A DNA stretch of 64,000 bases from Tubulanus polymorphus (GCF_964204645.1 NC_134036.1:6292600-6356599); one strand, 5' to 3'. Shown: positions 2,537-26,080, counted from the stretch's first letter. Numbers and translations: made by a program. Notes: generated by a model not told the origin, from the sequence alone.

Positions 2537-3214
<678 letters not shown>

Positions 3215-3549
3215 TCGTTGCTAACGAGGGTTTTGTAATTGGATTTACTTGTGTTGGTTTGGGAAAATATCCGATTATGAAACTGAACAACAGCCCGGTT
3301 ACTGACTGACTCTGAAACATCTCGAATTGAATTCATATTTGAACCTCAGTCGTCAATTGTCGTGTTATAATTAGATTCAATAAAACTGAGAGTAAATAAA
3401 TCAAACATCGAGTCGTTCACTGTTTATGACTCCAGGTTACTGATTTTCGAAGTGACCTATCGATAAGGGGCAAGAAACGTCAAATCTGATTTTTGCGTTT
3501 TACTCTTAACTGATCCCGCGCGACGTCGCAATAAGTATTTCACCACGAG

Positions 3550-3852
3550 GTCCCGTATTGTTGGACAGCTTTAAACACTTTTTACATTAAAACCTTTAGC
3601 ACGATTAGTTGTCGTTCATTCCCCCTTTTGCCACAAGTTTAGTTCATTTCTCTCAGCCGCAGTTGTAAAAATATACGTCACTTTTAGCAAGATTGGCATA
3701 TTTTATGTCATTGGTTGTATTTTTGGCGTGATTTGAGATACTACAATATACAACTTTTCTCGTTTTATTAGATTACTATACGCAAATTCGAAATGGTCAG
3801 GCGCTGAGTTATATTTCTGACAGAATTGAAAATTACGTTTATAAGCTGTTGT
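3550..3852. mobile_element. Degenerate arm of the long-TIR MITE family also seen at 39522 and 44653
   Basis: GTCCCGTATTGTTGGACAG...TTGTCGTTCATTCC..CTTTTG...AAAATATACGTCACTTTTAG matches 39571-39745. Confidence 0.55.
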
Positions 3853-3912
3853 TAGTCGAATCTGAGAGGAGTTACATTTTATGAAAAATGTTCGGATGGA
3901 AAGTGGAAAATT

Positions 3913-3960
<48 letters not shown>

Positions 3961-4051
3961 GATAATGATAATGATAATGATAATGATAATGATAATGATA
4001 ATGATAATGATAATGATAATGATAATGATAATGATAATGATAATGATAATG

Positions 4052-4083
<32 letters not shown>

Positions 4084-4200
4084 GATAATGATGATAATGA
4101 TGATAATGATGATAATGATAATGATAATGATAATAATGATAATGATAATAATGATAATAATGATAATAATAATGATAATAATAATAATAATAATAATAAT
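3913..4200. repeat. (ATA)n/(ATGATA)n microsatellite
   Basis: Direct reading; source of the poly-I and poly-MI ORFs. Confidence 0.97.
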
Positions 4201-4833
4201 CAACAGAATTACAAGAAGGTTTCTGCGAAAGCAGCAGAAAACCTAATAAAACTTGTTTTGGTGTGTGGCATCGTCTTGGTGAGAGCCCTTGGTGAGAGAA
4301 AATGGGAGCGCGTTATCAGAAGATAATGGCATGTAGTTCTCTAGGATCGCTATGTAAAGCTGGGGTCACTCAGTCCTGGAAGTGGTTGTCTCGACAGAGA
4401 TCTTACGACCTTAGTGTAACCAACTGTGGTATATCAGACACTAAGCCAAGTTTGTTTTCACAAAGACTTGAGATGACTTCAATTCGATTGGATAATTGGA
4501 ATTTATCAACTAATCGAAATAGAAGAAAATGAAAAATGAAATGAAACAGTTTTTGGTGTAACCATACTGTGGTGCATCAGACAATAAGGTGAAAGGTGAA
4601 AATCTGGCATGTTGCGAGGACGCCACACGCTCAACTGCTAGTGCAGTTTAACAAAAAAACTCCGCTGGAGCCCAATTCGAAAATATTAAGTCGTTGAAAT
4701 AATTCTGATATTCTTGCTGCACAACCTATTCTGATATTCAATGATATTGGCTTTCACCACACTGTGACGTCACAGTGTTTTGTCCGAATGTGAATAGTCG
4801 GCGATTAAGTGTGAATGTTTACCGGCTACAATC

Positions 4834-5063
4834 GGGCGGACCGGATGGCTTAGTCGGTCGGCGACTAGCGTGTCACCGCTGTGGCCCAGGTTCGAGTCTC
4901 GGAGGAGGCGGGTCAGGATGTGGCAATTGATCTCCGGTAAGCGGGCGAGTCGAGAGTGCTGTCCTCCCTGGAATGAGGTTGCTAATGCGTGAGTCCTACA
5001 AAATAACTGGTGTGGGGTAAATTATGTTTAATTCAGTCGTTTCTGGCTGAATTATTTATTTAT
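4834..5063 (+). mobile_element. tRNA-derived SINE-like element inside left arm
   Basis: A-box TGGCTTAGTCGG (4846-4857), B-box GGTTCGAGTCT (4889-4899), (ATTT)n tail at 5051-5063. Confidence 0.6.
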
Positions 5064-6584
5064 CCCACAATACCGGTCCAGGTTGCGGAGTAATTCCACC
5101 AGGGGCCTTCGACTTTTTTACTATATTAGTTTGATATTTCAAGTTGACTGGTGAGGGTTTGGGAAATTTTTTATTTTTGTTTAATTCCTCAAGAAATCGA
5201 AAAAATCCCAGCGAGAATTCCGTAGATATTTTGTTAGTAATGCAGCTATCAATCTCCAGGTAAATTGACAAAACTTCAATGATTTTTTAAACTTCACCAG
5301 CTTCCAGTCAGAGTAGACGTGTACGCGGCGATGTCTGGTGAACGTGTGCATAAAATCGGCCTCGAAACGACAATCCAATAGAGAATCACTCACCGGAGAC
5401 CTGCCACACGCTCTACTACACAAAAGTGCCGCGTGACTGGACAAACTTTTAAGCAAACATCAATATTCCTGAAGCAAAACTCGAAAATAGTAAAATTGAG
5501 CCGGAATTATAGTTCAAAACGAGACGTAAATAGAAGGGAAATCTACAATAAAGTTTGTTGGATAGTTTAGATAAAACTGCAGTATGCAATTTTAGGCTAA
5601 AATCCTAGTATTCCACATTCTATCTTCAACAATGTGTGTCTCTATGAATAGTCGAATTAAACTCGATGACCTATAATACCTATAGGAAATGTTTGGCACG
5701 AATTGAATGGTTCTCGAGGATAAGCGTCGCGTACTCGGGTCTGCCACAGGAATGCGCGATCGAGCCTTCTGATTGATCCATTCCGGTCGCCTCGATGATG
5801 CACCGTCGCTGATTGGTCGACGTATGTATTAAAAGGGCGGTTCGAGCCTCCCTGTGCCAGTCCGAGAACTGATGCCCAGTGATGAAGGTCAACCTATAAA
5901 AGCTCTGCAACAAGGTGTGAAGAACAACTGACGATGGAGAGGAGACTGCTGTTGCTGCTACTGATGTCGGATTACAACTTCAAACGGATGACGGCTAACC
6001 CAGAGGGTATTTGCTGATAAGGGCGAGTTCGCTGTTGTTGATTTCCGGTGTTCAATTTCTAGTCTACACACACATTTTGAAAAGGTTAGAAAGTTCATGG
6101 AATGGAATGTTTTAGTTATGAATCGACCGTATCGATAATTATCGCGTTTTCTTTATGGTTTTGATGTTGAACCCAAACTTTTTTTAACATTTGGCTTAAC
6201 TTTTCAAATCGCTTTTGGTTTTGTCTTTGATTTATTTCTGGAATTTCTTGGATTATTCGCACTTTTACACATTTTGTCTCTTTAGGATTTTTTAACCTAC
6301 ACCAGTCCGTTACTTCAACAACTATGTGTACACAGCTTGTTTGCCGCAACATCCAGAACCTGCTGCTGCTGCTACCACATTGATAATTGCACCAACCCAC
6401 AGTTTGCTGTTACGTACCGCATTGACCCTTCTAGAACCAAGCCAACCTGTTTACAACCGTCCAACTTTGATAGATTAGGTAACTTTATCAACATATAATT
6501 TGGATATTCAATGATCGTTTTCATAAGCTGACTTAATCTTTATTTTTATCTTTTGTTTTTTAGACTATACTCCCAATCCAAACC

Positions 6585-6935
6585 GAGACGCAGACTCTTC
6601 TCAGACTACAGCACCATCCTCAAAGCTCGAGATACTGACTCAGCACCATCTTAAAACCTCGAGACGCAGACTCTACTCCGACTACAGCAACATCTTAAAA
6701 CCTCGAGACGCAGACTCTACTCCGACTACAGCACCATCTTCAAACCTCGAGTCGCAGACTCTACTCCGACCACAGCAATATCTTAAAACCTCGAGACGCA
6801 GACTCTACTCCGACCACAGCAATATCCTAAAACCTCGAGACGCAGACTCTACTCCGACTACAGCAATATCCTAAAACCTCGAGACGCAGACTCTACTCCG
6901 ACTACAGCAACATCTTCAAACCTCGAGACGCAGAC
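6585..6935 (+). repeat. 44-bp minisatellite (~8 units), left arm
   Basis: Unit CCTCGAGACGCAGACTCTACTCCGACTACAGCAACATCTTAAAA with 44-bp period (6657, 6701, ...). Confidence 0.92.
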
Positions 6936-7509
6936 GTTAATTCGTTTTGCCGCATGTTATAAAGTAACGTAAATAAATAAACGTACATCTACATAAAATG
7001 CTCGTCTCTACTAAAAATCTTTGTCTCGGGCACTTTGCCCCGGAAAGGACTCTTCCCCCTCACAACTTCACACTCTACCCCAGAAAGACAACTATTCCAA
7101 GGAAAGGACTCTTCCACTCGGCCTCGGAAAGGACTCGCTCGGAAAAGAACTCTTCCGCTTGCAACTTCTCACATTCAAGGAAAGGACAAAGTCAAAACGG
7201 AAAGTACAAATTATTCAGAATTACATTTTTTATTCCAAATTCAAAGTAGGAATTTCTTACAGCTTGTTTGCAAAAGTAAAATTCAACATTTTATTGAATC
7301 ATCAATAAAATTATGGGATTTGAACCACCTAGCTAGCTAGCTAGCTAGCAGCCCAGCACCCTACCGACTACGCTATAGCGGCACATATACAACCTGCAGG
7401 GGAAGTCATATTTATCCATTGCTTAAGCACATTTTATCAAAAAAAATAATGCCATCTACCGGGAGAGACAGGAACTATTTCCTCAACCCGGTAGATTGAA
7501 GCAATCTGG

Positions 7510-7802
7510 AAGTGAGCGAGACAGAGAGTGAGAAGAATAAGAGAGGGGGGAGAAGGGAGGAGAATGAGAAGAGCGGAGAATGAGAAGAGAGAAGGAGAAC
7601 GAGACAGACAGCGGGAACATGAGACAGAGAGCGGGGAGGATGAGAGATGAAAATAAGAGAGGGATGAGAGGAGGATGAGAATGAGAGAGGGGGAGAGGAG
7701 AACGAGAAGGGGAGAGGAGAACGAGAATGCGAGAGGATGAGAGAGGGAGCGGGAGAATGAGAGAGAGTGAGAAGAAAGAAGACAATGAGATAGAGAGAGA
7801 TA
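7510..7802. repeat. Degenerate GA-rich polypurine tract (shorter mirror CT tract at ~22495-22705)
   Basis: Direct reading; source of the S/L/P-rich spurious ORFs. Confidence 0.9.
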
Positions 7803-8167
7803 GGATGGCATATCACCTAAACTTCTATGTTCCTTGTTGTTTTCTATCCGTCAGATTCTAGGTGCCGGGAGCAGTTTTACATTTTTCAGTTTTCAGTTCA
7901 AACACGTATTCATCCCATCAGCAGCAACGTCACACATTTAGTCCTCGTGGACATAAGATTTCACTGTATCTGAAGTCGAGTTCGTTTGTTTGTTTATCCT
8001 CTCTGCCCACACATATTTATGCAGTTCATCTGATGTAGTCCTGATCAACAAACACAAACAAACGTCAATAGTTCCACCGTGTACGAACGTCCTAAAAATA
8101 TACATGAAACTTAATAGAATGATTTGAGGCCACCTATCAAACATACACAGTAAGAGTTAAGTCTAGT

Positions 8168-8860
8168 TACCGGTGTATCAGAGAAATGGCAATCTTAGGT
8201 AACCCCTAAAATGTGGGTTAAGGGTCAAGTATTTTTTATCTCCGATTTCGATGAAATTCAGTGTCGACATGTATTTTGATGTGCTAATCACAAATCCGAA
8301 AGAATTTTTCGGATCCAGGGCCCCAAAAATGAGAAATTTGAATTTTTAGGGGGACCCCTAAATTTTCAAAAGGCCTTGGACCCCAGAGTTTTTTAGATAT
8401 TCAAAATCTGATTGCATATTTAGAATCAGCACCCCTAAAAATAGTAAGGGCTAAAATTTCAAGCAAATCGAAGAGATTCGATTTTTTGGCCAAAAATGGC
8501 AAAAATCTAAGTCCAGGAGTTTTTTTCGGCGAAAAGTTTTTTTTCTCTGATTCCTTCGAAGCTTGGCAGGAAGATGTATTTTGGCGTGTAGAATACGGAT
8601 CTGCAATCAGATATCAAATCGGAGTTCATCTTCATGGCCAAATTAGAGTTTAATTGGCCAAAAAATGCACCCCAAAAATGGGGTACAAAGTCAAAAATTT
8701 GTTCACTCTATTTGAATAAAATTTGGTACAGATATGTTTTTTGGGGTGCTGATCACGAATATCAAGTTAGTTTCTGGATCAAAAAGCCCCTAAAATGAAA
8801 TATTCAGGATTTCATGTTTTGACCCCTAATTTTTGTCACTAATTTTGATGAAATACGATT
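8168..8860. mobile_element. DNA-transposon-like remnant with internal TTTTGGGGTGCTGAT-type subrepeats (mirror ~21460-22139)
   Basis: Starts TACCGGTGTATCAGAGAAA, resembling a Tc1/mariner TA+TIR start. It contains repeated GGGGTGCTGATCACGAAT / GGGGTGCTGATTCTAAAT motifs; the second TIR was not found within the arm. Confidence 0.3.
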
Positions 8861-10489
8861 TTTTATTTAACCCGTAAATGGCACTGACCAAACGTACAAT
8901 GGAGAAGAAGAGCTAATTTGCATAAACAATGGAGGCAGAGAGAGAGGAAGAGGAAAAGCGAGGGAGAGAGACAAGAGAGAGACAAGAGAGGTGAGTGAGA
9001 ACCTTCATCATATTTCTCGACAATCGCATTCTATTTTAGAAATGATTAATTTTTGAATAGCCCGGAAACACGACACAGTGAAATGCTAACGACCAGAAAC
9101 GCTAATGCGTCAAATTAATAGGTGGAATAGGTGATCGACCAAAACTGGTATCTGGCTACAGGTAATCAAATACAGTATTATCAAATAAGCTATGATGAAG
9201 GTCCAATGTTAACACACTCAATACAATAAGGAGAAGAATATATTCACCTGGCTGTTTGACTAAATCCGAATTAGGTGCCGAAAATCTTCCAATGTTGTTG
9301 TAAATCCATTAATGCTTTTAGGTTTTAGTTCATAGTCCAAACACATTTTTCATTTAATCTGTTGACAGCATCGCGAAACTATTTAAGTCGATGGTATGGT
9401 GAATCCTCGAGATAGAGTTTTTAACGCTATGATGCATTCCTTTGTTCACTGAGTGCTCCGTGAATGTTATGTCATGATAGGTCGTTGAGCGTGAAACTGC
9501 TGGTGAATTCGCGCTAAGAATTCGCCGTTTCAAAGCTCCGTGTAGAGGCGAAATCGATGAAATATCCAAGATGTCGAAGATAAACAGGATCGAGTCCACC
9601 ATGGATTATGAAATTCAAAACAAAGGAAAACAAAACTACAATTGTATTTACATACATCTAAACGGTGCCAGTGACAATCAAACTTTGCAGTAAGCAGGGC
9701 GCAGTTTAACAGTTGTGGCTCAAGTTAAAAAGGTTTTGGAATTTGGAAAGTTGGTAGATTGGTTTTTTCCGGATTATTTACTGTGCTTACCTATTACATC
9801 CTTTTAAACACTTTGCTGAAATCAAAGTAATTTTCAGCACCTTCAAAAGCATTTCCATTTTGAAGGAGTTTTTAAGGTAGGACAATGTCAAATCAACGAA
9901 CCGAAACTAAAACGAACTTGGATAGAACTCTTTCGAGATCAATATATAAAACACTTAAGATCGACGAGTTGATATCGACGCCATTGGGTTCGAGTCCCGA
10001 TTATTCCAGCGGTTCAGAGGTTTTATGGTGTAATGTAAATTTCGACAAATAATGCAACTAGGATATCGGCAAATAATGCAACTAGACCTTAGATTTTTTT
10101 TCACTAAGCCGAAATATTGAAAAGCAATGGAATACAACAGTTAGATTGACGAGTAGGCGCCATAACGACATGATGCATGATACAAGATAATTTGGGTTCG
10201 AGTCCCAATTATTCCAGCAGCAAAGTGGTTTTAATGTGAAATTGAAATTTCGGCTAATATAAGACCAGAGCTTCAATTACTTACTGAAAACTACGGAATA
10301 TTTTATACAGTCGTTTCGAAGTTTACGCCCGTTTTTTTATCCCCATGAATTCCTTATGAACAAATTTTGAATAGCGGCACATTATTAGGATTATCGTATT
10401 CTAACTAATTATATAGATTCAAACCAAAAAATAAATCAAATTTAACACAAGAACTAATTTTAAATTATGAATAATAAATAATTAATTTG

Positions 10490-12120
10490 AGTTTAAATTA
10501 ATACTAATTTCAAAGGTTCAAAGCACAGACAATGAGTTTAATTGAAGGAAATGATTAATTTCAAAGGGTCAAAGCCTAAACAATAAGTTAAATTAAAGAA
10601 ATAACTTATTACATAGATTGCAAGCCTAAACAATGGGTTTAGTTCAAAATAAAAACTAATTTTGTAGATGAATTGAAGAAAAAAATTAATTTCAAAGATT
10701 CCAAGCGAAAACAATAAGCTTAATTGAAGACAATAACTTATTTCATAAATTGCAAGCCTAAACAATGGGCTTAATTAAACTAATTCCAAACATTTTAAGC
10801 GAAAACAACGAGTTTAATTAAACACAAAAACTAATTTCAAAGATGCAAAGCCTAAACGATGAGCTTAATTGAACACAATAACTAATTCCAAACCCTCAAA
10901 GCCTTAACAATGAGTTTAATTGAAGAAAATAACTTATTTTTAAATTCAAAGCTGAAACAATGAAGACAATGACTCATTTCAAAGATTCCAAGCCTAAACA
11001 AAGAGCTTAATAGAAGGCAATAATTTACTTCATACATTCATTGATGGCAATAACTAATTTCAAGGATTCCAAGCCTAAATAAAGAGCTTAATTGAAGACA
11101 ATTACTAATTTCAAAGATTCAAAGCCCATACAATGAGTTTAATTGAAGACAATAACTAATTAAATAGATTCATAGGACAAAAATGAGTTCAATTTGAGTT
11201 TGAATTAAGGCAATAACTTATTTCATAGATTCAAAGCTTAAACAATGAGTTGAGTTAAAGACAATGACTAATTTCATAGATTCAAAGCCTAATCAAAGAG
11301 TTTAATTGAAGGCAATAACTAATTTCAAACATTTTAAGCCTAAACAATGAGTTTAATTGAAGGAAATAACTAATTTCAAAGATTCAAAGCCCAAACAATG
11401 AGTTTGATTAAAGACAATAACTTATTTCATAAATTCAAAAACAAAAGAATGATTTAAATTGAAGACAATAACTAATTCAAAAGATTCAAAGCCTGAACAA
11501 TTAGTGTAATTGAAGACAATAACTAATTTCATACATTCAAAGCCTAAACAAGGAGTTTAATTGAAGGCAATAACTAATTTCAAACATTTTAGGCATAAAA
11601 AATGAGTTTAATTGAAGGAAATAACTAATTTCAAAGATTCAAAGCCCAAACAATGAGTTTGATTAAAGACAATAACTTATTTCATAAATTCAAAAACAAA
11701 AGAATGATTTAAATTGAAGACAATAACTAATTCAAAAGATTCAAAGCCTGAACAATTAGTGTTATTGAAGACAATAACTAATTTCATACATTCAAAGCCT
11801 AAACAAGGAGTTTAATTGAAGGCAATAACTAATTTCAAACATTTTAGGCATAAAAAATGAGTTTAATTGATGACAACAACTAATTTCAAACATTTTAAGC
11901 CTAAACAATGAGGTTAATTGAAGACGATAACTAATTTCAAAGATTCAAAGCCCAAACAATGAGTTTAATTGAAGGAAATAACTTACTTCATTAATTCAAA
12001 GCCAAAAGAATTAGTTAAATTGAAGACAATAACTAATTCGAAAGATTCAAAGTCTGAACATCAGGTTCAATTGAAGACATTTACTTTTTTAATAGATTCA
12101 AAGCCCAGACAATGAGTTCT
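10490..12120 (+). repeat. 51-bp AT-rich satellite array, left arm (~1.6 kb), with a 255-bp higher-order duplication
   Basis: Consensus-like TTCAAAGATTCAAAGCCTAAACAATGAGTTTAATTGAAGACAATAACTAAT. AACTAATTT recurs at 11521 and 11572; the variant AAATTCAAAAACAAAAGAATG recurs at 11431 and 11686. Confidence 0.95.
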
Positions 12121-13729
12121 AATGCAACCGAAACAAGAAAAATAATTAATTACGATGAAATCTAACTTTCTGAGTAAGGATTCAGTCTACTTTATGTAAA
12201 TTCACCATTACTGGACTCATTAACCTAACTGAATGTTTCCTAAATAAAAACAAAATTGGAATTCCAACTTACAGATTTATTTGTGTTTGTTTTGAGCATA
12301 TTCTTTGTTTATCTTTTCCTCGTGGAGAGAAGTGACATCCAAGCTACTGTAGTCAGCTCACAGGAGTCATCTATTGGGCCAGGTTGGCTTAATTAACATG
12401 GATTGGATATCAGGTCCTGATGAGGCGAAAAAGATCTGGAATCTACCAAATGTTGGTTCAGCAAACTGGCAGCAGTGCAGTGGCCCAATTGAAAAGGTGC
12501 CCACCTGAAAAAAGTGATAACAACCATTTAACATCACAATCAAATCGACTAAACCAGAGACTATTTACATTTCAAGTAGAAATGCTAATCACATACGTAA
12601 CCTCAAGCCTGACCTAACTTAAATCGCATATATAAAAAAGGGGCTTCAATTTTTACTCACCAATTTGTGTTTATAACTAAAGCATAGTAAATCTTGATGA
12701 TGGGCTCAAGCATCGTTGGAATTCCTGTAGAAGCTACTATACTGTCGATGTTTTAGTTTAGTCAGCGCGTATTGGCAGCAATTAGGTATGTATGAGTTGA
12801 ATGCTGAATGACACCATCTGAAAATAAAAACCATTAAAACATTAGTTCAACCTATTAGCAAGAGATAGTCTTCAACTAGAAATGGGTTCAATTCGAATCG
12901 ATGTATTATTGATTATTCCTTTCAAACACCGAGGACAATGTGTTACCGTATAAACCGGTCTATGCTTTGACCATTTTCAACGGACAGTGACAATGCGGGT
13001 CACCGCCGTACTATAGTTTGATGATATCTATCTGACCTTGAAAGCGTTTTATACTTCAAAATTCTACAGTATGGTACCGATATAACAGATATTTTTACCA
13101 CTCCCAGTAAAATGAGATATCAATATCGTCAGCATCTCCTAATTTGAAATTCCATTTATTCGAATTATGACTTGAACACAAATATCAAAATATCACGCAT
13201 TTAAAGTCTAAAAATGACTTGCATTAGTGCAGCGGTCAACAGCGCAAACCACTCGGCCACCGATCCTCGACTATACTAAGCTTTCTGGCATATGGTATGC
13301 AAGTCAAGGAGGTCACGGTAGCGTAAACACATCCGAATCATGCGACTGTGGAGGTCGTTTGCAATTCAAGGTCACGGTAACGTAAGAGTTGTTCCGAATC
13401 GCGCGACTGTGGAGAACGTTCTCGCGGAAGTAGACGAGGTTACAGACGAGTGTTGACGAATCTCTCACCGGTCCTCGGTAAAGCTAATGTAAAAACAGGT
13501 AAGAGACGTGTTTATTTTTCCGGAAACTCGGACCTCTAGAGTCGGCAGTTCCGGCAGATAACATTTGAGTTCGACTCGAAATTTTAAATTCGGTCCCAGT
13601 TCCAGTAGACAATCGTCCCACCAGCTCTCCAAAAGATGTTGGCTTAAGAGACGCAGAAAGAGGCCGTCCATTAAGAAGGAGTTCGCCAGATTAGACTTCC
13701 AATCCGATCAACACCAATAATGGGACACA

Positions 13730-14270
13730 ATAATGCCCTATAGCAGTAATACACGATTTGTTAAATTACTATGGAAGCCTAAAAGGTGTTGGAAGTTTGA
13801 TCTTTGAGGTAAACGCGAATGCCTCATTGCAGAGATACACGATTTGTAAAACTACCAGGGTTTGCTATGAGGTGTTGTAAGTTGATAAATAATTTTTTTG
13901 GGCTAATACCGATACTTCATTGCAGGGATCTTGGTATTGTTAAATTACTAGGGGTGTTGAAAAGTTTACAATGTGTGTTGGGTAATACTATGCAGGGTAG
14001 TTAGGTTTGCAAAACTACTGAGGAAGCCTGCAGTTGTAGGGTTTCGATTTTTCTGGTGAAATCAATGTTTTATTGCTAGGGTATAAGGTTTGTATAAGTG
14101 TCAGGGAAGCCTTTGTCACTAATGCGGAGAAATACCACTCAAAAAACTACTAGGGAAACCTATTGGGTGTTTAAAGGTTGATAGATATTTGTTGGGTAAC
14201 ACCAAATGCCTTATTGCAGAGATCTAAGTTTTGTTGAAATACTAAGGAAACCTGAAAGGTGTTAAATTAA
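13730..14270. repeat. Degenerate ~70-90-bp tandem repeat in the palindrome spacer
   Basis: Recurrent AATGCC..ATTGCAG.GAT....GATTTGT.AAA.TACTA.GG...CCT...AGGTGTT units. Confidence 0.6.
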
Positions 14271-15454
14271 TGAATTCATCTGTTTCAGTGGGTGTAAAAT
14301 ATCTATTATCAATTTTTGTCTCGCCCACAAGCCCTACGGCTGAGGTACAAACCGTTATGCGAGCATATTCGGTGTTTTACAAAATGAAAATGAAATTGAT
14401 ATTCTATCGAAACGGTTTTGATATTTGTGTTCAAGTCATAACTCGACTAAAAGGAATTTCAAATTAGGAGATGCCAACGAGATTGATATCCTATTTTACT
14501 GGGAGTGGTAAAAACATCTGTTATATCTATACCATACTGTACAATTTTGAAGTATAAAACGCTTTCAAGGTCAGATAGATATTATCAAACTGTAGTACGG
14601 CGGTGACCCGAATTGTCACTGTCCGTTGAAAATGGTCAAAGCATAGACCGGTTTATACGGTAACACATTGTCCTCGGTGATTGAAAGGAATAATCAGTAA
14701 TACATCGATTCGAATTGAACCCATTTCCAGCTGAAGACTATCTCTTGCTAATAGGTTGAACTAATGTTTTAATGGTTTTTATTTTCAGATGGTGTCATTC
14801 AGCATTCAACTCATACATACCTAATTGCTGCCAATACGCGCTGACTAAACTAAAACATCGACAGTATAGTAGCTTAACGATGCTTGAGCCCATCATCAAG
14901 ATTTGCTATGTTTTAGTTATAAACACGAATTGGTGAGTAAACATTGAAGCCCCATTTTTATATGTGAGATTTAAGTTAGGTCAGGCTTGGGGTTACGTAT
15001 GTGATTAGCATTTCTACTTGAAATATAAATAGCCTCTGGTTTAGTCGATTTGATTGTGATGTTAAATGGTTTTTATCACTTTTTTCAGGTGGGCCACTGC
15101 GCTGCTTCCAGTTTCTTGAACCAATATTTGTTAGATTCCGGTTCTTTTTCGCCTCATCATGACCTGATATCCAATCCATGTTAATCAAACCAACCTCGCC
15201 CAATAGATGACTCTTGTGATCTGACTACAGTAGCTTGGATGTCACTTCTCCCCACGAGGAAAAGATAAACCGAGAATATGCTCAAAAACAAACACAAATA
15301 AATCTGTAAGTTGGAATCTTTTTTTGCTATTTAGAAAACATTCAGTTAGGTTAATGAGTCCAGTAATGGTGAATTTACATGAAGTAGACTGAATCCTTAC
15401 TCAGAAAGTTAGATTACATCGTAATGAATTATCTTTCTTGTTTCGGTTGCATTA

Positions 15455-18400
15455 GAACTCATTGTCTGGGCTTTGAATCTATCAAATTAGTAAATTATTC
15501 AATTGAACTTGTTGTTTAGGCTTTGAATCTTTTGAATTAGTTATCGTCTTCAATTTAAACCATTCTTTTGGCTCTGAATTAATGATATATGTTACTTTCT
15601 ACAATTAAACTCATTGTTTTGGGCTTTGAATCTTTGAAATTAGTTATCATCTTCAATTAAACTCATTGTTTTTGGCTTTGAATCTTTGAAATTAGTTATT
15701 GTCTTCTATTAAACTCATTTTTTATGCTTAAAATGATTGAAATTAGTTATTGTCTTCAATTAAACTAATTGTTGAGGCTTGGAATCTATGAAATTAGTTG
15801 TTGTCTTCAATTTCACTAATTGTTTAGGCTTTGAATCTTTTGAATTAGTTATTGTCTTCAATTTAAACTCATTGTTTAGACTTAAAATGTTTGAAATTAG
15901 TTATTGTCTTCAATGTAACGCATTCTTTTGTTGTTGAATTTATGAAATAAGTTATTGGCTTCAATCAAACTCATTGTTTTGTCTTTTAATCTTTGAAATT
16001 AGTTATTTTCTTCAATTAAACTCACTGTTAAGGCTTAAAATATTTGAAATTAGTTATTGCCTTAATTCAATCTCAATTAAACTCATTTTTGTGCTATGAA
16101 TCTATATAATTAGCTATTGTCTCCAATTAAACTCATTGTTCGGGCTTTGAATCTTTGAAATTAGTAATTTTCTTCAATTAAGCCCTTTGTTTAGGCTTAA
16201 AATCTTTGAAATTAGTTGTTGCCATCAATTAATCTATGAAGTTAGTTATTGCCTTCAATTAAGCTTTTTGTTTAGGCTTGGAATCTTTGAAAGGAGTTAT
16301 TGTTTTCATTATTTTGACTTTGAATTTATGAAAAAGTTATTTTCTTCAATGAAACGCATTGTTTAGGCCTTGAGGCTTTGAAATTAGTTATTGTGTTTAA
16401 TTAAACTCGTTGTTTTGGCTTAAATTAGAATGTTTGAATTGAACCCATTGTTTAGGCTTGTAATCTATGAAATAAGTTATTGTCTTCAATTAAGCTTATT
16501 GTTTAGGCTTGGAATCTTTGAAATTAGTTTTTTACTTCAATTCATCTATGAAATTAGTTTTTGTTTTCAATTAAACCCATTCTTTAGGCTTGCAATCTAT
16601 GTAATAATTCATTGTCTTTAATTTAACTTATTGTTTAGGCTTTGACCCTTTGGAATTAATCATTTTCTTCAATTAAACTCATTGTTTGGGCTTTGAATCT
16701 TTGAAATTAGTTATCGTCTTCAATTAAACTCATAGTTTATGCTTAAAATGTTTGAAAATAGTTATTGTCTTCAATTAAACTCATTGTTGAGGCTTGGAAT
16801 CTATGAAATTAGTTGTTTTCTTCAATTTCACTAATTGTTTAGGCTTTGAATCTTTTGAATTAGTTATTGTCTTCAATTTAAACTCATTGTTTTGGCTATA
16901 ATGTTTGAAATTAGTTATTGTCTTCAATTAAACTCATTGTTTATGCTTAAAATGTTTGAAATAAGTTATTGCCTTCAATTAAACTATTTGTTTAGGCTTT
17001 GAATCTATGAAATTAGTTATTGTCTTCAATTACACTAATTGTTTAGGCTTTGAATCTTTTGAATTTGTTATTGTCTTCAATGTAACGCATTCTTTTAATG
17101 TTGAATTTATGAAATAAGTTATTGTCTTCAATCAAACTCATTGTTTGGGCTTTTAATCTTTGAAATTAGTTATTTTCTTCAATTAAACTCATTGTTTAGG
17201 CTTAAAATTTTTGAAATTAGTTATTGCCTTCAATTAAACTCATTGTTTAGGCTTAGAATCTATGAAATTAGTTATTGCCTTCAATTAAGCTTTTTTTAGG
17301 CTTGGAATCTTTGAAAGGAGTTATTGTCTTAGTTGTTTTGGCTTTGAATTTATGAAATAAGTTATTTTCTTCAATTAAACTCATTGTTTAGGCTTTGAGG
17401 CTTTGAAATTAGTTATTGTGTTTAATTAAACTCGTTGTTTTGGCTTAAATTAGAATGTTTGAATTGAACACATTGTTTAGGCTTGCAATCTATGAAATAA
17501 GTTATTGTCTTCAATTAAGCTTATTGTTTAGGCTTGGAATCTTTGAAATTAGTTTTTTCCTTCAATTCATCTATAAAATTAGTTTTTTTTTTCAATTAAA
17601 CCCATTGTTTAGGCTTGCAATCTATGTAATAATTTATTATCTTTAATTTAACATATTGTTTAGGCTTTGACCCTTTGAAATTAATCATTTTCTTCAATTA
17701 AACTCATTGTTTGGGCTTAAAATGTTTGAAATCTGATCTTGTCTTCGATTAAACTCATTGTTGACGCTTGGAATCTATGAAATTAGTTGTTTTCTTCAAT
17801 TTCACTAATTGTTTAGGCTTTGAATCTTTTGAATTAGTTATTTTCTTCAATTAAACTCATTGTTTAGGCTTAAAATGTTTGAAATTAGTTATTGCCTTCA
17901 ATTAAACTCATTGTTTAGGCTTTGAATCTATGAAATTAGTTATTGCCTTAATTCAAACTCAAATTAGACTCGTTTTTGTGCTATGAATGTACGTAATTAG
18001 TATTTGTCTCCAATAAAACTCATTGTTCAGGCTTTGAATCTTTGAAATTAGTAATTTTGTTCAATTAAGCTCTTTGTTTAGGCTTGGAATCTTTGAAATT
18101 AGTTATTGCCATCAATTAATCTACGAAGTTAGTTATTGCCTTCAATTAAGCTTTGTGTTTAGGCTTGTAATCTTTGAAAGGAGTTATTCTTTAGGCTTTG
18201 AGGCTTTGAAATTTGTTATTGTGTTTAATTAAACTCGTTGTTTTGGCTTAAATTAGAATGTTTGAATTGAACCCATTGTTTAGGCTTGCAATCTATGAAA
18301 TAAGTTATTGTCTTCAATTATGCTTATTGTTTAGGCTTGGAATCTTTGAAATTAGTTTTTTCTTTCAATTCATCTATAAAATTAGTTTTTTTTCAATTAA

Positions 18401-19340
18401 ACCCATTGTTTAGGCTTGCAATCTATGTAATAATTTATTATCTTTAATTTAACATATTGTTTAGGTTTTGACCCTTTGAAATTAATCATTTTCTTCAATT
18501 AAACTCATTGTTTGGGCTTAAAATGTTTGAAATCTGTTCTTGTCTTCGATTAAACTCATTGTTGAGGCTTGGAATCTATGAAATTAGTTGTTTTCTTCAA
18601 TTTCACTAATTGTTTAGGCTTTGAATCTTTTGAATTAGTTATTTTCTTCAATTAAACTCATTGTTTAGGCTTAAAATGCTTGAAATTAGTTATTGCCTTC
18701 AATTAAACTCATTGTTTAGGCTTTGAATCTATGAAATTAGTTATTGCCTTAATTCAAACTCAAATTAGACTCATTTTTGTGCTATGAATGTACGTAATTA
18801 GTATTTGTCTCCAATAAAACTCATTGTTCAGGCTTTGAATCTTTGAAATTAGTAATTTTGTTCAATTAAGCTCTTTGTTTAGGCTTGGAATCTTTGAAAT
18901 TAGTTATTGCCATCAATTAATCTACGAAGTTAGTTATTGCCTTCAATTAAGCTTTGTGTTTAGGCTTGTAATCTTTGAAAGGAGTTATTCTTTAGGCTTT
19001 GAGGCTTTGAAATTTGTTATTGTGTTTAATTAAACTCGTTGTTTTGGCTTAAATTAGAATGTTTGAAATGAACCCATTGTTTAGGCTTGCAATCTATGAA
19101 ATAAGTTATTGTCTTCAATTAAGCTTATCGTTTAGGCTTGGAATCTTTGAAATTAGTTTTTTCTTTCAATTCATCTATAAAATTAGTTTTTGTTTTCAAT
19201 TAAACCGATTGTTTAGGCTTGAAATCTATGTAATAATTTATTGTCTTTAATTTAACTTATTGTTTAGGCTTTGACCCTTTGAAATTAATCATTGTCTTCA
19301 ATTAAACTCATTGTCTGCGCTTTAAACCTTTGAAATTAGT
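15455..19340 (-). repeat. 51-bp satellite array, right arm (~3.9 kb), with ~0.8-1.0 kb higher-order repeats
   Basis: Same monomer inverted. The diagnostic variant TTAAATTAGAATGTTTGAA recurs near 16420, 17445, 18248 and 19049. Confidence 0.95.
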
Positions 19341-22300
19341 ATTAATTTAAACTCAAATTAATTATTTATTATTCATAATTTAAAATTAGTTCTTGTGTTA
19401 AATTTCACTTATTTTTGGTTTGAATCTATGTAATTAGTTAGAATACCATAATCCTAATAATGTGCCGCTATTCAAAATTTGTTCGTAAGGATTTTATGGG
19501 GGTAGAAAAAAACAGGCGAACAGGTTATCGAAACGACTGTATAAAATATTCCGTGGTTTTCAGTAAGTAATTGAAGCTCTGGTCTTATATTAGCCGAAAT
19601 TTCAATTTCACATTAATACCACTTTGCTGCTGGAATGATTGGGACTCGAACCCAATTTATCTTGTATCATGCATCATGTCGTTATGGCGCCTTCTCGTCA
19701 ATCTAACTGCTGTATTCCATTGATTTTCAATATTTCGACTTACTGAAGAAGAAATCTAAGGTCTAGTTGCATTATTTGCCGAAATCCTAGTTGCATTATT
19801 TGTCGAAATTTACATTACACCATCAAACCTCTTAACCGCTGGAATAATCGGGACTCGAACCCAATGGTATCGATATCAACTCGTCGATCTAAACTGTTGT
19901 ATGTATTGATATCGAAAGAGTTTTATCCAAGTTCGTTTTAGTTTCGGTTCGTTGATTTGACATTGTCTTACCTAAAAAAACTTCTTCAAAACGGAAACGA
20001 TTTGAAGGTGTTGAAAATTACTTTGATTTCAGCAAAGCGTTTAAAACGATTTAATAGGTAAGCACAGTAAACAATCCGGCAAAAAACAAATCTACCAACT
20101 TTCCAAATTCCAAAACATTTTTGACTTGTGTCACAACTGTTTAACTGTGCCTTGCAAGGTTTGATTGTCACTGGCACCGTTTAGATGTATGTAAATGCAA
20201 TTGTAATTTTGTTTCCCTTTGTTTTAAATTTCATAATCCATGGTGGACTCGATCCTGATCATCTTCGACATCTTGGATATTTCATCGATTTCGCCTCTAC
20301 ACGGAACTTTGAAACGGCGAATTCTAAGCGCGAATTCACCAGCAGTTTCACGCTAAACGACCTATCATGACATAACATTCACGGAGCACTCAGTGAACTA
20401 AGGAATGCATCATAGCGTTAAAAACTGTCTCCCGAGGATTCGCCATACCATCGACTTAAATAGTTTCGCGATGCTGTCAACAGATTAAATGTAAAATGTG
20501 TTTGGACTATGAACTAAAACCTGAAAGCATTGATGGATTTACAATAACATTGGAAGATTTTCGGCACCTAATTCGGATTTAGTCAAACAGCCAGGTGAAT
20601 ATATTCTTCTCCTTATTGTATTGAATGTGTTAACATTGGAACTTCATCATAACTTATTTGATAATACTGTATTTGATTACCTGTAGCCAGATACCAGTTT
20701 TGGTCGATCACCTATTCGACCTATTAATTTGACGCATAAGCGTTTCTGGTCGTTAGTATTTCATTGTGTCGTGGTTCCGGGCTATTCAAAAATTAATCAT
20801 TTCAAAAATAGAATGCGACTCTGAATTATAGAACATTGTTTTGTCGAGAAATAAGATGATGGTTCTCACTCACCCGATCTTGTCTCTCTCCACTCTCTCT
20901 CCCTCGCTTTTCCTCTTTCTCTCTCTCTCTGCCTCCATTGTTTATACAAATTAGCTCTTTTTCTCCATTGTACGTTTGTTCAATGCCATTTACGGGTTAA
21001 AAAAAAAATCGTATTTCATTAATGACAAAAATTAGTGACAAAAATTAGGGGTCAAAACATGAAATCCTGAATATTTCATTTTAGGGGCCAGAAAAATAAC
21101 TTAATATTCGTAATCAGCACCCCAAAAAAAACATGTCTGTACCAAATTTTAATAAAATAGGGTGAAAAAAAATTTTGACTTTGTACCCCATTTTTGGGGT
21201 GCATATTTTGGCCAATTAAACCCTAATTTGGCCATGAAGATGAACTCCGATTCAAGAACACTGAATTATAGAACACTGTTTTGTCGAGAAATATGATGAT
21301 GGTTTTCACTCACCTCTCTTGTCTCTCTCTTGTCTCTCTCCCTCGCTTTTCCTCTTCCTCTCTCTCTGCCTCCAATGTTTATGCAAATTAACTCTTCATC
21401 TCCATTATACGTTTGTTCAATGCCATTTACGGGTTAAATAAAAAATCGTATTTCATCAAAATTAGTGACAAAAATTAGGGGTCAAAACATGAAATCCTGA
21501 ATATTTCATTTTAGGGGCTTTTTGATCCAGAAACTAACTTGATATTCGTGATCAGCACCCCAAAAAACATATCTGTACCAAATTTTATTCAAATAGAGTA
21601 AATGAAAATTTTGACTTTGTACCCCATTTTTGGGGTGCATATTTTGGCCAATTGAACCCTAATTTGGCAATGAAGATGAACTCCGATTTAAAATCTGATT
21701 GCAGATCCGGATTCTACACGCCGGAATACATCTTTCTACTAAGTTTCGAAGGAATGGGAGAAAACAAATTTTTTCCCGAAAAAAAACTCCTGGACCTTAG
21801 ATTTTTGCCATTTTTGGCCAAAAAATCGAATCTCTTCGATTTGCTTGAAATTTTAGCCCTTACTATTTTTAGGGGTGCTGATTCTAAATATGCAATCAGA
21901 TTTTGAATATCTTAAAAACTCTGGGGTCCAAGGCCTTTTGAAAATTAAGGGGTCCCCCTAAAAATTCAAATTTCTCATTTTTGGGGCCCTGGATCTGAGA
22001 AATTCTTTCGGATTTGTGATCAGCACATCAAAATACATGTCTACACTGAATTTCATCGAAATCGGAGACAAAAAATATTTGACCCTTGACCCTCATTTTA
22101 GGGGTTACCTAAGTTTGCCATTTCTCTGATACACCGGTAACTAGACCTCTTACTATGTCTGTTTGATAGGTGGCCTCAAATCATTCTATTAAGTTTCATG
22201 CATATTTTTAGGACGTTCGTACACGGTGGAACTATTGACGTTTGTTTGTGTTTGTTGATCAGGACTACATCAGATGAACTGGATAAATATGTGTGGGCAG

Positions 22301-22828
22301 AGAGTATAAACAAACGAACTCGACTTCAGTTACAGTGAACTCTTATGTCCACGAGGACTAAATATTTGACGTTGCTGCTGATACGTGTTTGAACTGAAAA
22401 CTGAAAAATGTAAAAACTGCTCCCGGCATCTAGAATCTGACGGATAGAAAACCACAAGGAACATAGAAGTTTAGGTGATATGCCATCCTATCCTATCTCT
22501 CTCTCTTTCTCATTGTCTTCTTTCTTCTCACTCTCTCTCTCATTCTCCCGCTCCCTCTCTCATCCTCTCGCATTCTCGTTCTCCTCTCCCCCTCTCTCAT
22601 TCTCCTTCCACTCTCATTCTCCTCTCATCCCTCTCTTATTTTCCTCTCTCATCCTCCCCGCTCTCTTTCTCTCGTTCTCCTTCTCTCTTCTCTCCCCTCT
22701 CTCACTTCCATCTACCGGGTTGAGATAGGAAATAGTTCCTTTCTCTCCCGGTAGATGGCATTATTTTTTTTTGATAAAATGTGCTTAAGCAATGGATAAA
22801 TAGGACTTCCCCTGCAGGTTGTATATGT

Positions 22829-22892
22829 GCCGCTATAGCGTAGTTGGTAGGGTGCTGGGCTGCTAGCCGAATGGTTGGTGGCTCAAATCCCA
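22829..22892 (+). other. Degenerate tRNA-like/SINE head (mirror at ~7314-7382 on -, where the anticodon region is replaced by (CTAG)n)
   Basis: A-box-like TAGCGTAGTTGG and B-box-like GGCTCAAATCC (GGTTCAAATCC in the left copy). No convincing cloverleaf. Confidence 0.4.
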
Positions 22893-23272
22893 TAATTTTA
22901 TTGACGATTCAATAAAATGTTGAATTTTACTTTGCAAACAAGCTGTAAGAAATTCCTACTTTGAATTTGGAATAAATTTAATTTGGAATAATTTGTACTT
23001 TGCGTTTTCCTTTCCGTTTTGACTTTGTCCTTTCCTTGAACGTGAGAAGTTGCAAGCGGAAGAGTTCTTTTCCGAGCGAGTCCTTTCCGAGGCCGAGTGG
23101 AAGAGTTGGAATAGTTGTCTTTCTGGGGTAGAGTGTGAAGTTGTGAGGGGGAAGAGTCCTTTCCGGGGCAAAGTGCCCGAGACAAAGATTTTTAGTAGAG
23201 ACGAGCATTTTATGTAGATGTACGTTTATTTATTTACGTTACTGTATAACATGCGGCAAAACGAATTAACGG

Positions 23273-23648
23273 TGTAGAGTCTGCGTCTCGAGGTTTGAAG
23301 ATGGTGCCGTAGTCGGAGTAGAGTCTGCGTCTCGAGGTTTTAAGATATTGCTGTGGTCGGAGTAGAGTCAGCGTCTCGAGGTTTTAAGATGGTGCAGTTG
23401 TCGGAGTAGAGTCAGTATCTCGAGCTTTGAGGATGGTGCTGTAGTCAGAGTAGAGTCTGCGTCTCGAGGTTTGAAGATGTTGCTCTAGTCGGAGTAGAGT
23501 CTGCGTCTCGAGGTTTTAAGATATTGCTGTGGTCGGAGTAGAGTCTGCGACTCGAGGTTTGAAGATGTTGCTGTAGTCGGAGTAGAGTCAGTATCTCGAG
23601 CTTTGAGGATGGTGCTGTAGTCTGAGGAGAGTCTGCGTCTCGAGGTTT
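23273..23648 (-). repeat. 44-bp minisatellite, mirror copy in right arm
   Basis: Reverse-complement units GTCGGAGTAGAGTCTGCGTCTCGAGG; order of variant units differs from the left arm. Confidence 0.92.
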
Positions 23649-25167
23649 GGATTGGGAGTATAGTCTAAAAAACAAAAGATAAAATAAAGATTAAGTCAGC
23701 TTATGAAAACGATCATTGAATATCCAAATTCTATGTTGGTAAAGTTACCTAATCTATCAAAGTTGGATGCAGTAAACAGGTTGGCTTGGTTCTAGAAGGG
23801 TCAATGCGGTACGTAACAGCAAACTGTGGGTTGGTGCAATTATCAATGTGGTAGCAGCAGCAGCAGGTTCTGGATGTTGCGACAAACTAGCTGTGTACAC
23901 ATAGTACACAAGTACACAAGTAACGGACTGGTGCAGGTTAAAAAACCTAAAAAGACAAAATGTGTAAAAGTGATTTATTTCTGGAATTTCTTGGATTATT
24001 CGCAAAGACAAAACCAAAAGCGATTTGAAAAGTTAAGCCAAATGTTGAAAAATGTTTGGGTTCAACATCAAAACCATAAAGAAAACGCGATAATTATCGA
24101 TACGGTCGATTCATAACTAAAACATTCGATTCCATGAAATTTCTAACCTTTTCAAAATGTGTGTGTAGACTAAAAAATTGAACACCGGAAATCAACAACA
24201 GCGAACTCGCCCTTATCAGCAAATGCCCTCTGGGTTAGCCGTCATCCGTTTGAAGTTGTAATCCGACATCAGTAGCAGCAACAGCAGTCTCCTCTCCATC
24301 GTCAGTTGTTCTTCACGCCTTGTTGCAGAGCTTTTATAGGTTGACCTTCATCACTGGGCATCAGTTCTCGGACTGGCACAGGGAGGCTCGAACAACCCTT
24401 CTAATACATACGTCGACCAATCAGCGACGGTGCATCATCGAGGCGACCGGAATGGATCAATCAGAAGGCTCGATCGCGCATTCCTGTGGCAGACCCGAGT
24501 ACGTGACGCTAATCCTCGAGAACCATTCAATTCGTGCCAAACATTTCCTATAGGTATTATAGGTCATCGAGTTTAATTCGACTATTCATAGAGACACACA
24601 TTGTTAAAGATAGAATGTAGAATGCTAGGATTTTAGCCTAAAATTGCATACTGCAGTCTTATCTAAACTATCCAACAAACTTTATTGTAGATTTCCCTTC
24701 TATTTACATCTCGTTTTGAACTATAATTCCGGCTCAATTTTACTATTTTCGAGTTTGCTTCAGGAATATTGAAGTTTGCTTAAAAGTTTGTCCAGTCACG
24801 CGGCACTTTTGTGTAGTAGAGCGTGTGGCAGGTCTCCAGTGAGTGATTCTCTATTGGATTGTTGTTTCGAGGCCGATTTTATGCACACGTTCACCAGACA
24901 TCGCCGCGTACACGTCTACTCTGACTGGAAGCTGGTGAAGTTTAAAAAATCATTGAAGTTTTGTCAATTTACCTGGAGATTGATAGCTGCATTACTAACA
25001 AAATATCTACGGAATTCTCGCTGGGATTTTTTCGATTTCTTGAGGAATTAAACAAAAATAAAAAATTTCCCAAACCCTCACCGATCAACTTAAAATATCA
25101 AACTAATATTGTAAAAAAGTCGAAGGCCCCTGGTGGAATTACTCCGCAACCTGGACCGGTATTGTGG

Positions 25168-25398
25168 GATAAATAAATAATTCAGCCAGAAACGACTGAA
25201 TTAAACATAATTTACCCCACACCAGTTATTTTGTAGGACTCACGCATTAGCAACCTCATTCCAGGGAGGACAGCACTCTCGACTTGCCCGCTTACCGGAG
25301 ATCATTTGCCACATCCTGACCCGCCTCCTCCGAGACTCGAACCTGGGCCACAGCGGTGACACGCTAGTCGCCGACCGACTAAGCCATCCGGTCCGCCC
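25168..25398 (-). mobile_element. Mirror copy of the tRNA-derived SINE-like element (right arm)
   Basis: Reverse complement of 4834-5063. Confidence 0.6.
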
Positions 25399-25619
25399 GA
25401 TTGTAGCCGGTAAACATTCAAACTTAATCGCCGACTATTCACATTCGGACAAAACACCGTGACGTCGCACGTCTACCAACAGCTTATAAACGTAATTTTC
25501 AATTCTTGAAAAATATCCTCTATGCTCGCGGAGAAAGAATTAAAGTAAATAATCTACTATTGTTCGTCGCCACCGTTGAGGGCGCTGGACAAAACGCAAG
25601 ATTACTAGCGGTGTCTAGA

Positions 25620-26080
25620 GGATTTTTGAGATGACGGCCTTTCCGTTCACTTGAAGTTCTATGGTTAGTTTAATAACCATTGATGATACGCTACATCCGT
25701 ATTGCGACGATAAAATCATGAGTAGTAGTTCATTCAACGTTTCGACTATATTTCTAATAGTCGTCCACGAGAATATATCAGTCAGCCAGTCAACTTTGAA
25801 AATCCATCCTAAAATCCGACGATCATGGCATTTTCTCAAAGCTAGACAGCCGGGGGCTTAATCAATAGCCGAGTATATGTTAGTTTACCTTTCAACCCTA
25901 TAGGTTTGCTAGACTTTTGTCCAAACATAGGATTGTTTATCAAAACTGTACTTCTATAAATTGTGTTTGCATATGGACACAGCTTCCGAGTCGATCTCTC
26001 GTGTCTGGTGTACGGATTCGATGGAACGACGATGTTAAATCCGAAAAAAATCCTAGACTCATCGCCAACTGAAATTGCCA
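25620..26080 (-). pseudogene. Possible highly decayed polypeptide GalNAc-transferase (GT2-like) fragment
   Basis: Ordered motifs across frames: FGFNIVV, TRHERS, MIVGF*DGFSKL, LTDI/ILVDDY*. They are reminiscent of GALNT 'GFN...TRH..C...VII.FHNE.WSTL...EIILVDD.S'. Many stops and frameshifts. Confidence 0.2.

Follow-up and report, generated by a model that had tools for sequence, protein, structure and literature searches.

Layout of the Locus

The window, a stretch of 64,000 nucleotides from Tubulanus polymorphus (GCF_964204645.1, NC_134036.1:6292600-6356599), contains knottin-type cysteine-rich exons on its plus strand, one at 3074-3208 and two at 28495-29096, and a large palindrome lies between them. 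Self-comparison of the window revealed two colinear inverted arms, 4763-13190 matching 25469-14416, separated by a spacer of 1,225 bp (13191-14415). The left arm (plus strand) measures 8,428 bp, the right arm (14416-25469, minus strand) 11,054 bp, and the palindrome in total 20,707 bp, of which the arms make up 94%; both outer ends are placed 8 bp beyond the originally predicted 4771 and 25461. Ungapped alignment of the arms gave 98% identity across the outer 716 bp, falling to 96% across the inner 460 bp, and the inverted repeat is far above chance expectation. The short left arm consists of one tailless copy of a non-coding repeat-mosaic unit and is colinear with a single copy elsewhere (L037) across 4746-12139, and the long right arm is a copy of the unit in which the 51-bp array is longer and 436 bp are duplicated in tandem (20821-21688). 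A gene duplication in which the arms carry knottin exons was ruled out, as none lies within the arms.

Composition of the Arms

The unit is a composite. Its head carries pol III-type boxes, and the other components are a 44-bp minisatellite, a GA tract, a piece of a repeat that is commoner in the genome, a 51-bp satellite private to the family, an inner part of unique sequence and a tail. The 44-bp minisatellite counts 6.8 copies in the left arm (6637-6935, plus strand) and 8.6 in the right (23270-23649), and is also found in dispersed copies of the unit family. A GA-rich tract (7550-7794 in left-arm coordinates) is present in both arms. The array of the 51-bp satellite extends over ~1.7 kb in the left arm (10402-12139, plus strand) and ~4.0 kb in the right (15451-19440), a difference of 2.3 kb; all 15 candidates for this satellite obtained at first look are on contig C12, every one at a locus that carries the unit. 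The stretch 7800-8857 (plus strand) belongs to a separate, far more abundant repeat with 290 first-look candidates on C8, C9, C11 and C12, and its homology to other contigs ends at a recurrent position, ~8854-8857 (query 1055-1058). The boundary at ~8855, together with the varying starts of segment D, was considered as a possible mark of 5'-truncated retroposition; start points of segment D recur because they come from duplicated composites. The inner unique part of the left arm (12140-13190, plus strand), which stops at the inner junction, shows 92% identity with the right arm, 97% with the orthologous arm in a segmental duplicate and 78-81% with single copies.

Each head contains a pol III A-box/B-box pair, part of a tRNA-derived, SINE-like module at 4846-4895 (plus strand) and a motif match at 25337-25386 (minus strand) in the right head; these are the only two pairs in the 64-kb window, with 0 expected from 100 shuffles. 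Neither ARAGORN nor Rfam called a tRNA in the arms or heads, so that the "SINE-like heads" of the original prediction hold at the level of the A and B boxes and no further. Other parts of that prediction agreed with our results: the colinear inverted arms around a 1,225-bp spacer with ~94% inverted repeat were recovered by self-comparison, the 44-bp minisatellite, the GA tract and the 51-bp satellite of unequal copy number were found in both arms, and the proposed lack of a transposase ORF was borne out, as ORFs of the arms, the spacer and four longer family copies gave no meaningful Pfam match (two sub-threshold matches both fell on one ORF reading through a minisatellite).

Relatives in the Genome

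The unit family comprises at least 29-66 copies on four contigs. A genome-wide search for head termini returned 29 (a reversed-pattern control returned 0), of which 25 are unpaired and the others form the only two convergent pairs; apart from these two pairs, the unit is one-armed everywhere in the genome. Inverted pairing of the inner arm was likewise limited to two of ~9 loci. A recurrent 5' boundary at the motif TGTGACGTCA stands beside several unrelated flanks, which suggests that the unit may have been mobile in the past. Neither target-site duplications nor consistent 3' ends were found for it, three tails ending at different points, and most copies share flanks within subfamilies, so that the amplification looks segmental rather than insertional. 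Upstream homology passes position 4763 in paralogue P (described below) and in five further copies (L006, L007, L009, L010 and L014), and in the C11/C9 subfamily it runs at least 1.5-5 kb beyond the unit head. Position 4763 was consequently rejected as a clean element end in the present subfamily, since P, L006 and L007 have the upstream flank in common with it. Inverted composites at C12:1.52 and 4.66 Mb were examined as candidates for a TIR-type structure and discarded, being old copies of one rearrangement and not paired termini.

The second two-armed copy (C12:5275501-5304611) is located 1 Mb away and has the same layout with an array of different size. It shares both flanks with the window (1-3960 at 92.7% and 23402-30000 at 97.8%), and the common region extends to at least 40 kb; it therefore represents a segmental duplication of this minimum size and was dismissed as evidence of transposition. 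Paralogue P (C12:6162500-6178500), 120 kb away, shows one unit, the segment here called "up", a retroposon remnant and then the right flank of the window (89%), and the knottin gene that follows its single unit is 94% identical to window positions 27684-28963. P also matches 4181-5923 of the window contiguously at 89-92% (C12:6172721-6173251 and onward), and matches to its knottin gene are found near the left exon at 2534-2641 and 3233-3429. Neither the second arm nor the spacer is present in P. It displays the one-unit layout beside the same flank and gene, as a paralogue and not an allele, and its truncation at the position corresponding to 12633 keeps it from being a clean empty site.

Junctions and Flanks

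In the single copies L038, L039 and L040 the arm end (equivalent to 13190/14416) passes directly into the reversed sequence from 14415 downward, for ~1,190, ~330 and ~90 bp; the single copies with this arrangement lie at C12:2065262, 4248384 and 1535929. The spacer is therefore one arm's own tail: the native continuation of one of the inverted copies, attached to the right arm and continuous with it (13227-14415, minus strand). Homology of the tail to L038 ends at ~13227, within a tRNA-like module that is intact in L038. Between this point and the left arm lie 36 bp (13191-13226) of filler without counterpart in L038, with microhomology inseparable from the arm ends. The novel inner junction is thus 13190|13191, where the left arm stops.

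The outer breakpoint, at ~3821, lies inside a remnant of a short and very abundant retroposon-like repeat (3766-4249, plus strand), a 5'-truncated tail with a stem-loop and a TAATAA-type 3' end that is split by an expanded (ATAATG)n microsatellite of 47.8 copies (3914-4197). The repeat gave 231-919 first-look candidates genome-wide at 92-96% identity, and an alignment with 12 dispersed copies placed a common 3' end near 4249, with copies reaching further 5'. A 37-bp piece of it (3821-3857, plus strand) is mirrored on the other side: ~34 of its 37 bases are the reverse complement of 25470-25507 (minus strand), a remnant fused directly to the right head. Upstream of ~3821 the similarity of the left flank to the right-flank sequence and that of P falls sharply. 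Both 13190|13191 and ~3821 are rearrangement junctions.

In this subfamily the unit head is natively preceded by the segment "up" (4250-4762, plus strand); L006 and L007 have 4549-4762 in common with the window. This segment adjoins the left arm and occurs in P but is absent beside the right arm, where comparison with P shows that ~615 bp ("up" and most of the retroposon-like repeat) were lost later. On the left, the retroposon copy reaches 5' to 3766, 55 bp beyond the copy in P and at the right arm (~3821), which requires either that homology to a resident copy guided the join or that the left side is ancestral. Either arm could be the original: the native upstream flank is on the left arm and the native tail on the right arm, and arm-to-arm recombination could have flipped the spacer.

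Divergence and Order of Events

Pooled substitution divergence was 1.9-2.3% between orthologous arms, 4.7% between the arms of the palindrome (outside the arrays) and 9.4-10.6% to paralogue P. Between the two arms it ranged from 2 to 7.6%, climbing from the outer to the inner part. Divided by the divergence from P, the arm-to-arm value came to 0.28 for the head and about 1 for the inner arm, suggesting that the outer part was homogenised in the past. Gene conversion between the arms is the most likely cause, although the gradient could have arisen in other ways, e.g., if part of an arm was replaced afterwards or if substitution rates were unequal. Since the segmental duplication the orthologous arms have grouped together, which argues against recent arm-to-arm conversion. 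Taken with the gradient, the pooled values indicate that the palindrome is old, that its outer part probably underwent homogenisation afterwards and that the whole region was then duplicated. We infer that the age of the palindrome is close to that of the split from P, which is ~7-10% diverged.

Discussion

The palindrome is a known kind of structural change. It is probably an old and genuine inverted duplication of one non-coding repeat-mosaic unit between two tandem knottin genes and not a mobile foldback element. The alternative named in the original prediction, an inverted duplication involving transposable-element sequence, is supported by the spacer as native tail, the 36-bp filler, the breakpoint in the retroposon remnant and the single-armed paralogue. 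The outcome is also essentially the plain inverted duplication that the same prediction had set against a transposon, except that the terminus is multi-copy and belongs to a family of one-armed units. The best reading of the layout is that a fold-back or template switch produced the inverted duplication within a repeat-rich cluster of toxin-like genes.

The reading put forward in the original prediction, an exceptionally large non-autonomous foldback transposon whose heads are long TIRs and which landed in the knottin cluster as a 20-kb unit, is very unlikely. The hallmark of such elements is there, i.e., long inverted arms that hold internal tandem repeats and little or no coding sequence; the internal arrays are unequal and an ORF is lacking, as in FB, Galileo and Tetris (PMC4079207), and the head terminus is multi-copy. 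The reading is, however, already contradicted on three defining features: no target-site duplication between 2 and 10 bp long is present (the left flank ends with ...CACCACAC and the right flank starts with CGTCTACC...); no two-armed copy exists at an unrelated site, the second pair among the 29 termini having both flanks in common with the first and the remaining 25 being unpaired; and similarity does not end at the termini, as matches to other copies reach beyond the left one. Moreover, the spacer is the arm's own tail and not a middle domain. An assembly artefact, in which a chimeric hairpin read or a mis-join of haplotypes created a false palindrome, is extremely improbable, as the arms show 2-7.6% substitutions, a 2.3-kb difference in satellite length and the 436-bp duplication, a 1.2-kb spacer separates them, the position is 6.3 Mb within an 11.5-Mb contig, and the layout is repeated in the second copy, ~2% diverged and with another array size.

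The palindrome might instead have come from two separate one-armed mobile units that ended up tail-to-tail after inserting independently or being duplicated locally, one tail then being lost and conversion making the arms alike. This is unlikely, even though the recurrent 5' boundary beside unrelated flanks, the at least 29-66 copies on four contigs, the native upstream flank of the left arm with its longer retroposon copy than on the right side, the outer arms that relative to P are far more alike than the inner ones (suggesting conversion) and the other type of inverted composite formed by the family at C12:1.52 and 4.66 Mb would all fit such an origin. The unit, however, lacks target-site duplications and consistent 3' ends, its flanks are mostly shared within subfamilies in a manner that resembles segmental copying, conversion is not seen after the segmental duplication, and the mirrored 37-bp retroposon piece and the filler junction are explained more simply by a single duplication event. 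We also considered, from the layout, that the palindrome is transcribed through both arms as a source of long-hairpin RNA or, separately, that the one-armed unit is a new, very long, non-autonomous retroposon with a pol III head that carries a satellite; this is improbable. If the hairpin were real, small RNAs could silence the 30-70 dispersed, satellite-bearing copies of the unit or influence the neighbouring knottin genes. Hairpin RNA or the provoking of rearrangements, as putative present-day activities, would be by-products of the palindrome.

Under the preferred inverted duplication, the layout points to the following course. The process would have begun where the tail ends, with a break or a stalled fork; the 3' end would then have folded back, or the polymerase switched template, and the arm would have been copied in reverse, leaving the tail as a loop. 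Later the outer parts of the arms may have been homogenised, most likely by gene conversion, and later still, ~2% divergence ago, the entire region, at least 40 kb long, would have been copied in reverse to the site 1 Mb away, since when the arrays appear to have changed in size.

These results remove the tempting claim of a foldback transposon of record size. What they offer is a ribbon-worm cluster of toxin-like peptide genes in which repeat-rich spacer DNA was first duplicated in inverted orientation and then probably homogenised in part, before a region of at least 40 kb was copied in reverse; inverted copies of this sort provide substrates for more inversions and for changes of copy number in the cluster. 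They also imply that long inverted arms with arrays are not sufficient to call a foldback element, the decision resting with flanks, genomic copies and single-armed relatives.

Among known systems, the palindromes of primate sex chromosomes are large and are kept by arm-to-arm gene conversion. The present palindrome resembles them in its kb-long arms, unique spacer, position in a multi-copy gene region and signs of partial homogenisation, but its arms are only ~95% identical, contain no genes and show no conversion after the segmental duplication. The Helentron-borne arrays of the Pacific oyster are an example of satellites carried by non-autonomous elements (PMC7492417), and they share with our unit a dispersed, single-armed, non-coding form and an internal tandem array private to the family; unlike Helentrons, the unit has neither Helitron-type ends nor consistent termini, and its amplification looks segmental. 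With FB and Galileo of Drosophila, Tetris and the sea-urchin TU elements the palindrome shares unequal tandem arrays in long inverted arms, the absence of coding sequence and a family-private satellite. Tetris copies, however, were counted as complete only with conserved structure and duplications of 8-10 bp (PMC4079207), and the palindrome, unlike foldback transposons, has no target-site duplication or independent two-armed copies, its arms being one-armed elsewhere and its middle the arm's tail. In fold-back inverted duplications at human breakpoints, the spacer (0.8-70 kb) is present once and belongs natively to one of the two copies, and the junctions show microhomology, insertions or hybrid repeats (PMC3907307). 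Unlike those cases, the present palindrome is an old interstitial structure (4.7% arm divergence) that is fixed in a germline genome rather than de novo and terminal, no history of terminal deletion or a dicentric is visible, and the duplicated segment is just 8-11 kb and made of repeats. Like them, it combines inverted copies with an unduplicated spacer, here of 1.2 kb, and a repeat element at another breakpoint (PMC3907307).

Results

The window contains a colinear inverted repeat, the arms of which span 4763-13190 (left) and 14416-25469 (right) in self-comparison around a spacer of 1,225 bp (13191-14415); the original prediction had this inverted, colinear layout right but set the outer coordinates 8 bp short at either end. 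Both arms carry, in mirrored order, a head, a 44-bp minisatellite (6.8 copies in the left versus 8.6 in the right arm), a GA-rich tract and a 51-bp satellite (1.7 versus 4.0 kb), as had been described, and the right arm has an additional 436-bp tandem duplication. The heads, previously called SINE-like, each contain a pol III A-box/B-box pair, with no others in the 64-kb window (0 expected by chance), but neither ARAGORN nor Rfam recognised a tRNA there. Pfam matched no ORF in either arm or in the spacer.

A single copy at C12:1524308, on the contig carrying the window, is colinear with left arm 4746-12139, including the minisatellite, GA tract and 51-bp satellite, so that each arm is a copy of a non-coding mosaic unit which is dispersed and one-armed. 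Segment 7800-8857 of this unit is part of a far commoner repeat (290 first-look candidates), and only about ten loci, all on C12, carry segment 8858-10400 and the 51-bp satellite. Upstream flanks are common to the copies within each subfamily, which points to amplification by segmental copying, not repeated insertion. The C11/C9 subfamily has the head inside a larger composite (at least 10 kb), with copies 95-100% identical to each other. This composite (L058, G000:C11:3236905-3246904, and L035) has at least 10 copies, several of them spaced ~42-44 kb apart on C11, and includes a 311-aa ATG ORF (L058:8438-9373) with no Pfam match; ~950 bp of it (L058:6630-7582) match the units of a ~6.3-kb-period tandem array on contigs C4, C30 and C34 at 98-99% identity, are found also on C2, C3, C7 and C8, and have no Rfam match at the gathering threshold. 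A second, different inverted composite of the unit, with a reversed 3' half upstream of a forward unit, occurs at C12:1.52 and 4.66 Mb (G000:C12:1517000-1537000 and C12:4657500-4672000; pieces L059, L037, L040 and L060) and shows that this family readily undergoes inverted rearrangement. The reversed half comprises inner arm, 51-bp satellite and a ~115-bp piece of segment 9946-10062, and sits ~1.3 kb upstream of the forward unit, which is complete. With ~80% identity to each other, both loci are copies of a single old rearrangement.

Three single copies continue from the inner arm end (equivalent to 13190/14416) directly into reversed spacer sequence, from 14415 downward, for about 1,190, 330 and 90 bp. 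Thus 14415|14416 is no junction, and right arm and spacer form one contiguous unit with the spacer as its tail. The true junction of the palindrome is 13190|13191. Tail homology to the best single copy ends at ~13227, within a tRNA-like module intact in that copy, and leaves 36 unmatched bases before the left arm. The module in the single-copy unit tail (L038:2830-2900, G000:C12:2067330-2067400) has an A-box, GGCCGAGTGG..., and a B-box-like motif, GGGTACGAATCCC, and receives no ARAGORN call; the window tail is cut within the matching sequence.

A paralogue 120 kb upstream (C12:6162500-6178500) has one unit only, oriented as the right arm, and neither a second arm nor a spacer; the unit is followed by an 'up' segment (equivalent to window 4181-4762), a short retroposon-like repeat, the right flank (89% identical to the window) and a knottin gene (94%). 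Base-level alignment revealed that the right arm of the window has lost ~615 bp relative to the paralogue, comprising 'up' and most of the repeat, and that a 37-bp piece of the repeat is left at 25470-25507, with a mirror counterpart at 3821-3857. Upstream of ~3821, within the repeat, the left flank sharply loses similarity to both paralogue and right flank. The mirror symmetry thus reaches past the arms, and the outer breakpoint at ~3821 is common to paralogue and right arm. Since the left repeat copy begins at 3766, 55 bp further 5', either the left side would be ancestral or the join was made through a resident repeat copy. The repeat (3766-3913 and 4198-4249) is short and very abundant, with 231-919 first-look candidates at 92-96% identity; it has a stem-loop, a TAATAA-type 3' end and an internal (ATAATG)n tract expanded to 284 bp here. 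It may be the tail of a young LINE or SINE, as other copies reach further 5'. A short way before the window start, past another knottin gene, L041 (window -2965 to -1315, G000:C12:6289634-6291284) is a diverged inverted copy (75-81%) of right flank 25501-26248, and thus some older mirror symmetry exists around the cluster spacer.

The left arm's outer 716 bp match at least 40 sites in the genome, the majority beginning at query base 1 or 2, and a 34-base terminal pattern marks 29 termini in the genome (18 forward, 11 reverse; reversed control, 0). Only two convergent pairs were found among them, the palindrome and C12:5275501-5304611, ~1 Mb off. The latter matches both palindrome flanks in inverted order (window 1-3960, 92.7%; 23402-30000, 97.8%), so it was ruled out as an independent insertion with flanks of its own; sharing both flanks and at least 40 kb, it represents a segmental duplication of the entire region in inverted orientation. 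This duplication (window 1-36200 and upstream versus G000:C12:5266439-5312423; 92-98% identity) takes in at least two knottin genes besides the palindrome, and in the copy the long arm has reached ~20 kb through a 6.76-kb internal satellite duplication. No target-site duplication was found at 4762|4763 and 25469|25470.

Segment-by-segment comparison of the four arms gave pooled substitution divergences of 1.9-2.3% between orthologous arms (window versus segmental duplicate), 4.7% between the two arms of one palindrome and 9.4-10.6% between either arm and the paralogue. Orthologous arms grouped together in every case, which indicates that the palindrome predates the segmental duplication, with no homogenisation of its arms after that event. 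Relative to paralogue divergence, arm-to-arm divergence rises inward, from a ratio of 0.28 in the head to about 0.46 (middle) and about 1 (inner part); together with the shared ~3821 junction, this gradient fits a palindrome of about the age of the paralogue, the outer part of which was homogenised later, before the regional duplication, most simply by gene conversion.

The window is animal, not human, DNA. Its knottin-type exons (3074-3208, 28495-28629 and 28962-29096, plus strand) all lie outside the arms, and the palindrome therefore lengthens one of the intergenic spacers in the tandem cluster, which would otherwise measure roughly 6-8 kb, to about 25 kb. On the minus strand, large exons of an LGR-type receptor (54423-57023) encode four LDL-receptor class A repeats, leucine-rich repeats and a rhodopsin-type 7TM domain. 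Long minus-strand ORFs lie at 62636-63955, 58055-60757 and 41546-43333; one has a reverse-transcriptase domain (RVT_1), three others (441, 445 and 595 aa) gave no hit in Pfam, and they are probably remains of a retroelement or other TE.

Discussion

The structure is real, and we consider it quite probable that it arose by an old inverted duplication within a gene cluster rich in repeats, an ordinary structural change, and is no giant foldback transposon. The exceptionally large foldback transposon originally proposed was rejected, because target-site duplications are absent, the sole other convergent pair is a segmental duplicate with the same flanks rather than an independent complete copy, and homology continues past the termini. 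The alternative offered alongside it, an inverted duplication involving TE sequence, agrees with the native tail in the spacer, the repeat at the outer breakpoint and the one-armed paralogue. One unit would have been copied inverted in a fold-back event, with the spacer as the tail native to one copy; a replicative template switch could have led to an identical product. Either arm could have been the template: the native upstream flank is kept by the left arm, the native tail by the right, and inter-arm recombination could have turned the spacer round. A rival history, in which two units lay side by side and were homogenised later, seems rather improbable, since it requires more events than a single fold-back.

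Hairpin RNA or fragility would be possible by-products of the palindrome, and the inverted pair of at least 40 kb, ~1 Mb apart, could mediate a ~1-Mb inversion. Tetris foldback elements have been judged by target-site duplications, independent complete copies and termini-bounded homology (PMC4079207), and the palindrome differs from them in all three. Its layout is that of documented fold-back inverted duplications, in which a single-copy spacer belongs natively to one copy, extra bases sit where the spacer end meets the inverted copy, and the other breakpoint carries a repeat (PMC3907307).
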